Assembly: GCA_977017575.1 (NCBI GenBank)
Contig: CDRNVI010000177.1
Location: 248,001 to 312,000, forward strand
DNA: 64,000 nt
Source: Paramoeba atlantica
Lineage: Eukaryota; Protista; Discosea
Direction: 5' to 3'
Each line of letters begins with the position of its first letter. Position 1 is the first letter of the stretch. Shown piece by piece: positions 50,791 through 57,772 of this stretch. The notes beneath the pieces are model-generated. The model was not told the DNA's origin, ran no database searches, and saw only the letters and a list, made by a program, of their open reading frames with translations. Position numbers and translations under genes: made by a program.

Positions 50791-50863
50791 GCTTCCGTGG
50801 CTCAGTCGGTAGAGCGTCAGTCTCATAATCTGAAGGTCGTGAGTTCGATCCTCACCGGGAGCA
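50791..50863 (+). tRNA. trnM-CAT: tRNA-Met (CAT), elongator type
   Basis: GCTTCCG/CGGGAGC acceptor stem; TCAGT-CTCATAA-TCTGA anticodon region; GTTCGATCC T-loop. Confidence 0.95.
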
Positions 50864-53800
50864 CTTTTTTTTGTCTTTTGATTTTTTTTTTCGTGGTGGT
50901 TTGAACCCTCCACTCCAGGTGGAGGTTTTTTTCTTTCTTTTTTTTACTCTACCCCCCCAACTCCCTCAAAATTCTCTTGTTTTCCTTCAATTCCTTGAAC
51001 TCATCTGCTTGCTTGAGGATCACTTTGAGCTTTTCTTTTGATTTTACAGAGTTCCTCAAGGGGGTCAGAGTGAAATTCCAGAAAATACAAAAAAAAGCAA
51101 ACAAAGAAAGTTATTTGGCAGACTGTCCTTTGATGGTTGAACACTGAGTGAGAAAAAAAATTCGAGGACAATCCAGTAACAATCACAGAAGAAGAAATTT
51201 GTTGAAACTTTTTGCTTTTGAAGTGTAGAAAGGGAACAGTGAAGAATTTAAAGATGGTTGACTCAAAATAATTTGGAATTCAGTTGCAAAACAAATTGAG
51301 GAAGAAATCTTTCATTACCAAGGAAAACAATTTTCGATCTTGACCTTGCTTTTTTTTGAAAGCTTGGCTAGGAAAATATGCACAGCATTAGAAACTGTAG
51401 CAAGATCTGGAAAAGAGAACAATTAATGCAACTCCCTTTTCTTCTGAGGAGGCCAATACAATAATGGACTGCTGGGCCCTGCTGATCTGAATCACACACA
51501 TTATATTTCTCAGAGCCCCTCACCCTCCAGTATCTTCCCCTTGTCCTCCAGTATCTACTCCTCTTATACCTCTGGTTTCTTCTCCTCATCTTCCAGGAAC
51601 TTCTCCTCTGGTCTCATCACTTTGTCCACACGATCGACAGATCCCTGGAGAGCAGGAGATAAAGAACACAGAAACACACACACCAAAGAAAAGTCGAAAA
51701 TGTGAGTTTTATTCATCAGGTAAATACAAGGGAAACATTAGAACTAGAGATAAAATGCGGGAGCAGAGAAACACAGTTGAGATGGGGGTGTGACAGAGAT
51801 AAAAGAGAGTGTAAAATCAGTGTTTTGATCGAAACAAGGACAGAATCAAATTGGGACAGGATAAAATAAACATCAGGAAAAATAGGAAAAGGAAAAGTAA
51901 AACAAGGGAAAAATACAATCGAAAAGGAGGAAGGAAGGGAGGGAGGGAGCAGTGATCAATCAGAGGAGCAGAGTGACAAGATGGCATCAAATTGAATAGA
52001 AGACAATCAAACAGGGTTTGTAACAAAACTCCTCTCACCTTCCTCTTCCAATTTCATATCCTTGTCCAGTCTCCTCTTATCCTCCACAAACAACACCCTC
52101 TGAAAATTCTGGTCCTGATGAATATTTTGAGGGAATGCCCAAGCGTAGGGCAACCCAACACCCAATAATGGAACCTGGAAACACAGAATATCCAACCAAA
52201 TTCTGCCATTAAAGCAAGAGAGCCACTCAACAAATTTCTTGTTTCACTTTTTTGAACCAATAGCCATGAATTCCCAAGAAATTGAAGACAAAATCATGAA
52301 AACTCACCCTCAAGCCACCAGAAGAATGCCATTTGTGCACATTTGAAAAGTTTCTCCAGAAGAACAAGCTTTGTGTTTCAGGTCGAAACTGCAACAGACA
52401 CAAAAATTTGCTCGATAATGTCAAAGTTTGCATTCAATGTTCGAAAAGACAACAGAAACAAAGGACCAGTCTCTCAAAAATTTGTGGAATAACATCACAA
52501 AACAAATTATAGAGAAGGTTTATGATTCACAAAAACGATTGATCAATTTGTTCAACAATCTTGCATTCAAAACCGCACAGCAAGCTCAATCAGGAAAAAG
52601 AACAAAATTACAAAAAGATCCAGCAAAATGGACAGTTTCTGTAACTCCTCTAACTTCTGAAGAAGCAAAGAAAATGATCCAATATTGGGGAATTGATACT
52701 CCTTCCCTGAAGGGTTGAACAAGACCTTTTTTTCATGTTGAAGGGTTTGCCTTGGGTGATTTTGAGGAATTGATCAAGCGTTTTGGTATCTCTCTGACTT
52801 TGTGTGGGATACAACAAAAGCATGATAAGGAATAAAGGTGTTTTTATTGGCTTGTTTTCGATTATCGACATTGAGAAAAGTTATGAAATTCATCAGTTCA
52901 GTGAAAAGTACAAGTCAATAAAAACACAAGCAAAACAATACTTCATCCACTTTCTTTTTTCAATTTTTGCAGGTTCAACATCATGTAATGGTGGAACTCA
53001 AAGCAGAGAAGATATGATCATCCAGATACTCCATCTTCAACAAAAACAATTGACAGCCAAGGTTGCAATACTCAAGGATTGAATACAAGATGACATTCCT
53101 GCCTTATTGATGAAGATCTCGAGTTTCTACAAGGAGAAGAAGGATGAACAAGTGACCTACCATCTTGTCAAGTCAATGGTGAAGGCAGGAATAGCAGCAG
53201 GAGAACAGAGACCAAAAAAACAGAGAAAAATGTGGTCTTCCTCATTTGGTGAATGACATGATGATGGTTTTCAGTCGAACAGACCTTCATCCCCAGAATA
53301 AATTCCTCCCAAATAGCACAAAAAGGCATTCATGACCCCACCAGTCCAGGTCTTTTATTCTAGAATGGAAACTTTAAACTCTCACATTTTATTGTACTGT
53401 TGTCAGGGTTGAGATGGGAGGCGCTTGCTGAGTGGGTAAACATCCATTCTCACAATTTTGAAGGGGAGAGTGAGAGCCAAAACGAAAATGCAAACACCAA
53501 CTCACTCTCTCAAAAATAAATCTTCATTTTGTGAGTTGATTCACTGAAACACTTCAAAAGCAGTGTGTTCTTTGTGTCACTCTGTGGGGTCACAAATAAA
53601 ATTCTCATTCTTATTTCTCTCAACAAAACAATTTGATTTTAAACAACAAAAAAAGAGGAGTGGGGGGGCGGGAACATCACCCACTCACTTGCTCTTTAAA
53701 ATTTGAATAAATTGATTTTTATTGAATCTAGCAATTACTTTTTGAAAAGGCAACAATCCTTCTTTTTTTTTCCCCGCCTCTCTCTCTCTTTTCTCTTTCT

Positions 53801-55477
53801 ATGTATTCATTCTCCCTCCTCCACTTCAAATATGATTTTTTGGGGGGTCACCAAAATACATTCAAAAAGAGGAAAAATTTAAAAACAGCAGTTTGAAAAG
53901 TTTGAAATGACAAAAAAAGAAAGAAAACCTCAGAACAATCTTTGGAAGGTTGAGACAAAAATCCAAAAAGACAAAAAAAAAAAGGAAAGGAAAGAAAGAA
54001 AAACAAAAGAAACAAAAGAAACAAAAGAAACAAAAGAAACAAACCATGAAAAGTCAAAAAAAAACCAAAGGAAAAAGAGGAGATCCCTTGAATTCAACAA
54101 CCCAAACACAAACTTTTACCGAACAAAGTCTCTCTCTCTTTCTTTCTCTCTCTCTTTTCTCTCTTCTCTCTTCCTCCTTTTCCCCAAACAAAAAAAAAGC
54201 GTTGAGCCGCTGATTTAGATCCCTTAATTTTTCGGGAAAGAGAAAGGGCAAAAAGATGCTCTTTATCAGCTTGATAATTGGTTTTTTTTTTTCGTTTTTG
54301 CTTCACTTTTCTTCTCTCCTCTTCACCCTCTTCAGTTTTCTTCTTCCGACCTCTTCAGTTCCCCCTTCCTCTCTTTTTTTCCTTTCTTTCATTCTCTTTT
54401 CCACTCAATATGACCTCCATTGAGGGAGCTTCCAAACTGACTTGAACAACTGCCTTTTTCTGTGGGGTGGGTGATGGGGGGAGAGGGAGGAAAAGGAGGA
54501 GAGGGGGGGGTTAAAAGGGATGGTGGTAGAATCAACCACAAATATCATGATGATAATTTTTTGAGGAGGGGTGGGGGGTGGGGGGGGATGTTTCGTGGGA
54601 GGGGGAGGGGAGAGGGGCATTCTGGCTGATCAAGAAAAGAGGTTTTTTCCTCCTTCTCTTCTCTTTTTCCTTTTTCTCCCTTTTTTTGTTTTTTTGAGTT
54701 TTCCTTTTTTTTCTTTTCTTGGGTTTTCTTTTTTTCTTTTTTCTCCATCTGTTTTTTTTCTCCTTTTTTCTTTTCTTTCTTTTGTCTTTCCCTTTTTTTT
54801 TCTTGTTTTTTTTTTCTTTTTTTTCTCACTGCTGTTTTCCCCCTTTGTCTTTTCTCTCTCTTGAGGGTAATTCTTTTTTTTAGTTCCTCTCTTTTTCCCT
54901 TTTGTTTGTGAGATTGGAAGATTTCATCTGGGAGGACAATGTTTTTGTGTTTTTTTCATTTGGATTTTTCATACTCTCTGGATGTGAATCTGAAAATTTG
55001 AACCCAGAGAGTATGAAAAAAAATTACAAATACCCACAATCACAATGGAAAACAAAAAATGGAAGAGCAAGAGGGGGGGGTTCTTGGGGGGGGGGAGAGA
55101 GAATGGGAGAGGAGGGTGAGCAACACACAACCTCTGTTTTTTTGCTTCTCTTCTTCTTCTTCTCTCTCTTTCTCATTCTCTCCTTCTCTCCTCTCTCTCT
55201 CCTCTCCTCTTCTCTTTCTCTTTCTCTTCTGCTTTTTCTTTCTCTCTCTCTTCTCTCTTCTCTCTTTCTCTTCTCTCTTTCTATTATTTGTTAAAAAAGG
55301 CTTTTGGCAAACAACTATCTCCTTTCTTCTCTTGTTTTATTTGTTTCTTTTTCTTTTTTTTTTTTTCTTTTTTCTTTTTCTTTTTCTTTTTTTTCTTTTT
55401 CTTTTAACTTTTTCATTCTTCTCTCTCTTTCTCTCTCCCCTTTTCTCTCCCTCTCTCTTCTCTCTCTTCTCTTTCTA

Positions 55478-55620
55478 GTGATCTTTCTGACAATACTTTG
55501 AGAGGGCTGTTCCATTAGAAATTGAAAATCTTCATGTCCAAATCATGTTTTTTTTTTTTATTTTTTATTTTTTTATTTTGTTTTATTTTTATTTTTATTT
55601 TATTTTTATTTTTATTTTCA

Positions 55621-57148: not shown

Positions 57149-57188
57149 GGTTCCATAGCTGGCAGAGCACCACCTTAGTAAGGTGGAG
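57149..57188 (+). pseudogene. Truncated tRNA-Thr pseudogene
   Basis: Copy of 50296-50340 with a 5-bp D-arm deletion, a CG->CA change and no T arm. Confidence 0.85.
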
Positions 57189-57699
57189 AATCTGAAAGTC
57201 AAACTTGCTCCTCTTTATACCTGCAATTTGGAAAAGGGACTTTGAAGTGCTCTGGTGGGAAAACACAAAAACTTTTGGTTGGGGAATCAAACAATATGAA
57301 GATGACACTGCTGTTGATAGGAAGGGGCCAACTTTTTTGTCAAACTTCCAAAGTTCCAAACTTTTCTATTGTAGAGCATTGCATGGGTTGGTTGTGCTCA
57401 GGGATGGCATTTTGTAATGGTTTCCCCTTGCTAAGTCAGTATCTTGTTGCTGGATCTTGAAAAATTACAGCTCCATTTCTCTACTAAAGATTATGGCTCA
57501 AAAGGTGGTTTACAGTCCTGTCATCATCAGGCAAAACCACTTCAGGAATTGTTCAAGCAATTTGAGAATGTTGAGGAGCATTTTATTTCAAGAGCCTGTG
57601 TTTAAAAGCACATAAGTTATCATAGAAACCAGTGATGATATGATGGCTTTTCTGAGTTTGATGACTTCACAAAAAAACAGAGTTTGAACATGGACATTG

Positions 57700-57772
57700 G
57701 CTTCCGTGGCTCAGTCAGTAGAGCGTCAGTCTCATAATCTGAAGGTTGTGAGTTCAATCCTCACCAGGAGCA
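57700..57772 (+). pseudogene. tRNA-Met (CAT) duplicate with four CpG transitions
   Basis: Differs from 50791-50863 only at TCGG->TCAG, GTCG->GTTG, TTCG->TTCA and CCGG->CCAG. Confidence 0.9.

Follow-up and report, generated by a model that had tools for sequence, protein, structure and literature searches.

We have analysed a 64,000-nucleotide stretch of DNA (the window), positions 248,001 to 312,000 of contig CDRNVI010000177.1 in an assembly deposited as Paramoeba atlantica (GCA_977017575.1), and have found that CpG dinucleotides in its short interspersed elements (SINEs) and in one of its two tRNA-Met genes have changed to TpG or CpA far more often than the other bases have changed. The same bias appears in SINE copies from the whole assembly, in which it is balanced between the strands and recurs at every CpG, and in nearly identical pairs of loci, in which it must be recent, and it is absent from a kinetoplastid that was assembled together with the amoeba. 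The best explanation, which judging from the sequence we hold to be quite probable, would be the decay of CpG driven by 5-methylcytosine (5mC) in a Paramoeba-like host amoeba, with a system of the kind present in the amoeba Acanthamoeba castellanii (DNMT1 plus DNMT3). A CpG excess of this size, equal on both strands, repeated at every CpG and recent, is to be expected if symmetrically methylated CpG undergoes deamination.

The two tRNA-Met (CAT) genes form the right ends of the two copies of a duplicated block (Table 1), and their alignment showed that they differ at exactly four positions (tRNA 18, 48, 57, and 67), all of which are part of a CG in copy A and of a CA or a TG in copy B. With respect to copy A, the changes in copy B are G18>A, C48>T, G57>A, and G67>A, while none of the 62 non-CpG bases differs, and the chance that four of four differences fall within the 12 CpG bases of a 74-base gene is P = 4.3e-4. 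According to our own reading of the sequence, the G18>A change would remove a conserved G of the D-loop and the G67>A change would produce a C6/A67 mismatch in the acceptor stem, so that copy B is probably decaying. Because copy B lacks the conserved G18, carries this mismatch and scores lower on the Rfam model, we consider CpG to be the older state. The CpGs of block A are confined to its tRNA genes, the aligned spacer being CpG-free in both copies. The truncated tRNA-Thr head of block B was also compared to the intact tRNA-Thr, from which it differs by one CpG>CpA change and a few other transitions.

The SINE is a 422-nt element on the minus strand, whose poly-A tail is seen as an oligo-T at the left end on the plus strand and which is flanked by target-site duplications (TSDs) of 15-16 nt. 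Between copies 1 and 2 there are 12 differences (7 at CpG), between copies 2 and 3 also 12 (6 at CpG), and between copies 1 and 3 there are 5 (2 at CpG). Even the two TSDs of copy 2 are distinguished only by one base, which turns a CG into a CA (Table 1). A preliminary description of this DNA had claimed that the four tRNA-Met differences are all CpG transitions, that SINE copy 2 carries at least five CpG changes against copies 1 and 3 and that its TSD differs by CG/CA, and the alignments bear out all of this.

To see the spectrum beyond the window, we gathered 43 distinct SINE copies (the 40 best-scoring of 161 candidates, their neighbours, and the window's own) and scored changes against the majority base, a best-scoring choice that under-represents old copies. 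In this set, transitions per site per copy amounted to 0.186 for CpG, 0.0225 for the remaining C/G, and 0.005 for A/T, with transversions at 0.0005-0.004, and the difference between CpG and other C/G was highly significant (Fisher P = 7.5e-66). Among the 41 young copies, the frequency of C>T per site depended on the 3' neighbour (CpG 0.170, CpC 0.019, CpT 0.013, and CpA 0.010), which makes CpG 9-17 times faster than the other C contexts and gives a CpG transition excess of about 12-fold. Mutations affect all nine consensus CpGs, each of them in 11-21 copies, eight of the nine sites have given rise to both TG and CA, and the changes are balanced between the strands (74 C>T vs 70 G>A). These three properties indicate recurrent, independent, and strand-symmetric events and not subfamily markers. 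One copy (L006) has lost four CpGs with nothing else changed, and across most copies the loss is graded, affects CpG first, and tracks an age proxy (rho -0.42, P = 0.005).

A similar result came from three independent locus pairs with an identity of 99.4-99.9%. All of their 31 differences are transitions, with no transversions, and the 158 CpG bases account for 16 of them vs 15 for the remaining 10,034 bases (a rate ratio of 68, with P = 1.3e-21). Because the decay is visible in pairs this similar, it must be recent. The CpG excess survives control for base composition, both in the 43 SINE copies and in these pairs, as the preliminary description had required of the paralog spectrum. When the same script was applied to a kinetoplastid haplotig pair from the same assembly (L041/L042), 27 of the 69 differences that it returned were transversions, and a CpG effect was absent (ratio 1.5, P = 0.22; 0.92 when compared to other C/G). 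These comparisons also bear on the possibility that the pattern is an artefact of sequencing or assembly, produced by miscalls of modified bases in long reads or by collapsed haplotypes. The region is present in four DNA runs, which are indeed small (55-202 million letters), each of them containing only about half of its 31-mers, and none of which is listed as bisulfite or EM-seq data. However, independent contigs agree on the decayed copies (there is no difference between L039 and L040 in 1,423 bases, and L026/L029 are 99.9% identical), the kinetoplastid contigs do not show the pattern, and a CpG depletion that extends over kilobases (observed/expected ratio, o/e, of 0.02-0.3) cannot be consensus error. 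Moreover, systematic miscalls at modified CpGs would themselves imply methylation, and we regard an artefact as extremely improbable.

The kinetoplastid comparison is available because the assembly (45.7 Mb in 248 contigs) is a mixture of kinetoplastid, bacterial, and amoeba-type (host-type) contigs. The low-numbered contigs are kinetoplastid, and those included in small samples have a GC content of 41-48% and a CpG o/e near 1.0; long intronless open reading frames (ORFs) are found on them in near-identical pairs (Table 1). One ORF of the kinetoplastid contigs carries the J-DNA-binding domain of JBP1 (PDB 2xse, E = 1.5e-41), and the RNA polymerase and NSUN ORFs on these contigs are intronless, while at least one contig, C89, is bacterial and carries RpoC (beta'). 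The window lies on C177, within the host-type set C137-C248, of which the sampled contigs are CpG-poor (o/e 0.02-0.57). Every SINE match falls on this set and conventional actin is also located there. Furthermore, 41 small subunit (SSU) rRNA 3' ends are found on C137-C244, with a spacing of 35-83 kb and a single orientation per contig, and the 5' end of the SSU and the 5.8S rRNA of the window are of what we take to be the ordinary eukaryotic type and not of the kinetoplastid one. The best explanation places the window among the host-type contigs of a mixed assembly, those of a Paramoeba-like amoebozoan. With such wide spacing the rDNA does not form a tight tandem array, and the unit of the window is flanked by 5S genes, tRNA genes, SINEs, and dead transposons. 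In an 80-nt SSU tail compared across the 41 sites, three of the four variants are CpG>CpA.

The CpG content of the window is low as a whole (o/e 0.37) and very uneven (Table 1). Outside the rDNA unit, transposable element, pseudogene, and intergenic DNA of the window shows an o/e of 0.04-0.5. The values are 0.02-0.57 around SINEs and 0.04-0.3 in transposable element and duplicated DNA, while the rRNAs, 5S, polyubiquitin, and the actin coding sequence retain 0.7-1.5. These values show that silent DNA is depleted and do not prove that methylation is restricted to repeats, because selection alone could keep the CpGs of genes. The repeat units of polyubiquitin, taken as an expressed-gene comparison, were uninformative, as coding constraint confounds them. 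The distribution of CpG is also relevant to the idea that CpG is mutable here independently of methylation, or that methylation has since been lost, the signature being a relic or a repair bias with no 5mC today. The moderate depletion of CpG even around the actin gene (0.45-0.6) would be in agreement with this, and so would the lack of a DNMT, SRA, or DNMT1-RFD signal in the assembly. However, small CpG effects have been reported in organisms without methylation and the excess of 12- to 68-fold found here is far above those, it is visible in pairs that are 99.4-99.9% identical and must be recent, and the kinetoplastid in the same assembly shows none. A relic or a repair bias is for these reasons very unlikely.

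Several results weigh against methylated-CpG decay as the explanation. How many CpGs a SINE copy has lost shows no significant correlation with the CpG o/e of the flanking DNA (rho 0.22, P = 0.16), and the non-CpG cytosines of young SINE copies change 2-4 times faster than their A/T sites. Furthermore, in two of the SINE copies there are 28 and 50 C>T/G>A changes, which affect all dinucleotide contexts and are exactly balanced between C>T and G>A (14/14 and 25/25); almost nothing else has changed in these copies, and their GC content is reduced from 0.39 to 0.33 and 0.27. A/T transitions in these two copies (0.006) are no higher than in the young ones. This is beyond what CpG methylation alone explains, and the second C-to-T process, which acts in every context, may be non-CpG methylation or a repeat-directed deaminase. 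It is possible, though unlikely, that it represents a second genome-defence process, in which the cytosines of whole repeat copies would be deaminated in all contexts, or methylated and then lost, on both strands. This would be a phenomenon resembling repeat-induced point mutation (RIP) outside fungi, next to a kinetoplastid symbiont nucleus with base J and without such decay. The strand balance of the two copies speaks against APOBEC-type editing of complementary DNA, and the absence of a CpA preference speaks against fungal-type RIP, CpA having the lowest rate of all (0.010).

The two heavily mutated copies would also fit a mechanism that replaces CpG methylation altogether, namely the repeat-induced enzymatic deamination of cytosine by a RIP-like, DNMT-like, or other deaminase, the CpG excess being then the sequence preference of the enzyme. 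In favour of this are also the differences between near-identical duplicates, all 31 of which are transitions, and those between the older duplicates of the window (182 transitions vs 59 transversions). However, CpA is the slowest context and is not preferred, most copies show a graded loss with age in which CpG goes first and not bursts, and no DNMT/RID-like gene was found in the assembly, although this search is weak. Moreover, the single base changed in the TSD of SINE copy 2 lies in a 16-nt sequence, which is short for a repeat-sensing system. Such a deaminase acting by itself is therefore quite unlikely.

The other results that count against a methylation system come from our searches for its enzymes, all of them over the whole 45.7-Mb assembly. 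The PF00145 profile gave no C5-methyltransferase candidate either at E <= 0.001 or at E <= 10. A back-translated pattern of motif IV (P-C-Q-x-F-[S/T]) found no enzyme, with 52 matches vs 36 in the control, and a pattern spanning motif IV to VI (PC[Q/N]...ENV) found mostly the 3' end of the SSU rRNA and no enzyme. SAD_SRA (the SRA domain of UHRF1) had no match, in host contigs that are incomplete or poorly searchable, and DNMT1-RFD had none either, in a search that was also silent in every control genome. Four motif IV candidates on host contigs, in which the last codon could read Ser/Thr, were translated and none of them is a methyltransferase, one resembling NAD kinase. A Tet_JBP search revealed only kinetoplastid JBP1/JBP2-like genes. 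The absence of a DNMT candidate, which the preliminary description had proposed to look for, is nevertheless a weak negative because the host-type contigs also lack a match to two universal families: all matches to RNA polymerase largest subunits and NSUN-type methyltransferases lie on contigs of the kinetoplastid or of bacteria, with nothing from C137 upwards. Either the assembly contains only part of the host genome, or this genome is too intron-rich for a six-frame profile search. A search of the literature on Paramoeba and Neoparamoeba revealed no work that deals with DNMTs or DNA methylation.

When all this is considered, the CpG-targeted hypermutation of the preliminary description corresponds to a real signature, which is strongly specific for CpG and symmetric between the strands, but the term is both too narrow and too strong, as the excess in young SINEs (about 12-fold) is like that of ordinary methylated-CpG decay and non-CpG cytosines decay as well. 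Its suggestion that CpG is methylated in repeats and duplicates agrees with a spectrum such as 5mC deamination predicts, although no methyltransferase was found in the assembly, whose host part is incomplete or poorly searchable. The contrast that it drew with Dictyostelium and Entamoeba, as amoebae with only Dnmt2, is fair, but the situation is not unprecedented in Amoebozoa, as A. castellanii has DNMT1 and DNMT3.

Under methylated-CpG decay, CpG cytosines would be 5-methylated on both strands in transposon copies, in dead copies of genes, and in intergenic duplicates, now or until recently, the mark being placed on silenced DNA by a DNMT1/DNMT3-type writer as in Acanthamoeba. Spontaneous deamination of 5mC would generate T:G mismatches that are poorly repaired, and the conversion of each CpG to TpG or CpA would be many times more rapid than changes at other bases. 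Functional genes, for RNA as well as for protein, would keep their CpGs through selection, through lack of methylation, or through both. In the case of the tRNA genes, the block with tRNA-Thr and tRNA-Met would have been duplicated, and the redundant tRNA-Met copy would have then lost four of its six CpGs and nothing else.

The window contains other duplicated segments (Table 1). The 16 differences of the shorter pair include one CpG transition and two that come from a single CG<->TA double change, and one of its two CpGs is common to both copies. In the older pair, one member of which represents the empty site for SINE copy 3, 14 CpGs occur in one copy or the other and not one of them is common to both. 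The two 5S rRNA genes both reach 102.8 bits with Rfam; aligned with their flanks they are 88% identical over 272 nt, and six of six CpGs are kept in both copies. The Hsp70 fragment abuts SINE copy 1 and is a 448-aa ORF that covers positions 82-523 of Pfam HSP70; its region exists in at least three copies on different contigs, 98-99% identical (also on C144 and C182; L002, L004). At the poly-A end of SINE copy 1 there is a 69-nt tandem duplication, and a SINE copy on C144 adjoins the same extra piece (98311-98376), within a segmental duplicate of the region that is 98.4% identical. Finally, a tandem repeat of about 193 bp lies in the first 6 kb of the window, a stretch with a GC content of 0.22-0.33 and only six CpGs.

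Table 1. Features of the window and of other contigs, with their CpG observed/expected ratio (o/e). Positions are those of the window unless a contig or locus is named.
Feature	Position	Strand	CpG o/e	Remarks
tRNA-Met (CAT) copy A	50791..50864	+		ARAGORN; Rfam tRNA 69.3 bits; looks intact; 6 CpGs
tRNA-Met (CAT) copy B	57700..57773	+		ARAGORN; Rfam 62.3 bits; 2 CpGs left of 6
Duplicated block A	50279..50891	+	0.39	Complete tRNA-Thr (50296-50368), spacer, tRNA-Met; self-BLAST, MAFFT
Duplicated block B	57132..57801	+	0.08	Truncated tRNA-Thr head (about 57156-57188), spacer, tRNA-Met copy B; 2 CpGs left; self-BLAST, MAFFT
SINE copy 1	16528..16949	-		Perfect 15-nt TSD; 8 of 9 consensus CpGs kept; tRNA-like head at right end
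SINE copy 2	59147..59557	-		2 of 9 consensus CpGs kept; 12 differences from consensus, all transitions
SINE copy 3	62016..62439	-		Perfect 15-nt TSD; 6 of 9 CpGs kept
Left TSD of SINE copy 2	59131..59146			CA; right TSD (59558-59573) has CG; only difference in 16 nt
Heavily mutated SINE copies	L008:2883-3306 and L009:424-847 (approximate)			On C193 and C236
Tandem duplication at poly-A end of SINE copy 1	16459-16527 vs 16525-16593			69 nt; 98.6% identity
rDNA unit (SSU, 5.8S, LSU)	40304..47135	+		Rfam; CpG-retaining contrast
SSU rRNA			0.81	
5.8S rRNA			1.46	
Large subunit (LSU) rRNA			0.91	
5S rRNA genes	10674-10792; 19484-19602	-; +	0.72	
Polyubiquitin			0.79	
Actin coding sequence			0.71	On C163
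Actin flanks			0.45-0.59	
Hsp70 fragment	16934-18280	-	0.47	
Reverse transcriptase ORF			0.24	
First 6 kb of window			0.04	
Tandem repeat of about 193 bp	2433-3420			Units 88-94% identical
Right end of window	57800-64000		0.12	
Duplicated segment	52843..53078	+		Paralogue of 57816-58052; 91% identity
Older duplicated segment	53562..55878	+		Paralogue of 61254-62024 plus 62440-63950; SINE copy 3 absent (empty site)
Second copy of older segment	61254..63950	+		Split by SINE copy 3
Kinetoplastid contig pairs	C3/C30, C39/C40, C34/C69, C15/C53, C44/C66			Near-identical

CpG decay of the 5mC type is already a known kind of footprint, and CpG methylation is known from another amoeba. A. castellanii has DNMT1 and DNMT3 and a CpG-only 5mC that is enriched on young retrotransposons, both long interspersed elements and long terminal repeat elements, and on silent genes; it was measured directly by enzymatic methyl sequencing, whole-genome bisulfite sequencing, and Nanopore sequencing, and no non-CpG methylation above background was detected (PMC12344493). 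The amoeba described in this work resembles Acanthamoeba in being an amoebozoan, in the CpG context, in that young retrotransposons and silent DNA are targeted, and in that expressed genes largely escape. It differs in being known from its mutational footprint alone, no enzyme having been found, and in that non-CpG cytosines also decay. In vertebrates, the decay of methylated CpG in Alu and L1 elements leads to a transition excess of about 10-fold, symmetric TG and CA products, and a low CpG o/e outside functional sequence. The CpG excess with respect to the SINE consensus is of about the same size here, its TG and CA products are also symmetric, and the CpG o/e is likewise low in sequence without a function, but this is a small protist genome of a different lineage, in which all cytosines show a strong additional C-to-T bias and transversions are almost absent. 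Fungal RIP, as it occurs in Neurospora, has a preference for CpA and is active in bursts during the sexual phase. Common to both are C-to-T and G-to-A changes in repeated DNA, some copies heavily mutated in all contexts, and almost no transversions; in contrast to RIP, CpA changes most slowly here, the rate at CpG is 9-17 times that of the other contexts, and most copies decay gradually. Dictyostelium and Entamoeba, which belong to the same supergroup and have similarly AT-rich genomes, possess only a Dnmt2-type enzyme, and it is with this enzyme content, not with their mutation spectra, that the CpG decay is contrasted.

These results also have consequences for the use of this genome. Many of the apparent genes in the rDNA-bearing repeat units, such as the Hsp70 fragment and tRNA-Met copy B, are decaying copies and should be annotated with caution, and CpG decay provides a fast clock with which SINE insertions and duplications can be dated here. 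Furthermore, the culture represents a natural comparison between two nuclei, that of the host, in which CpG decays, and that of the symbiont, which has JBP1 (of the base-J pathway) and shows no CpG effect. If 5mC is confirmed, the Paramoeba lineage would share repressive CpG methylation of transposons with Acanthamoeba, another amoebozoan, and this would support the idea that transposon-directed 5mC is an ancestral trait of eukaryotes that Dictyostelium and Entamoeba have lost.

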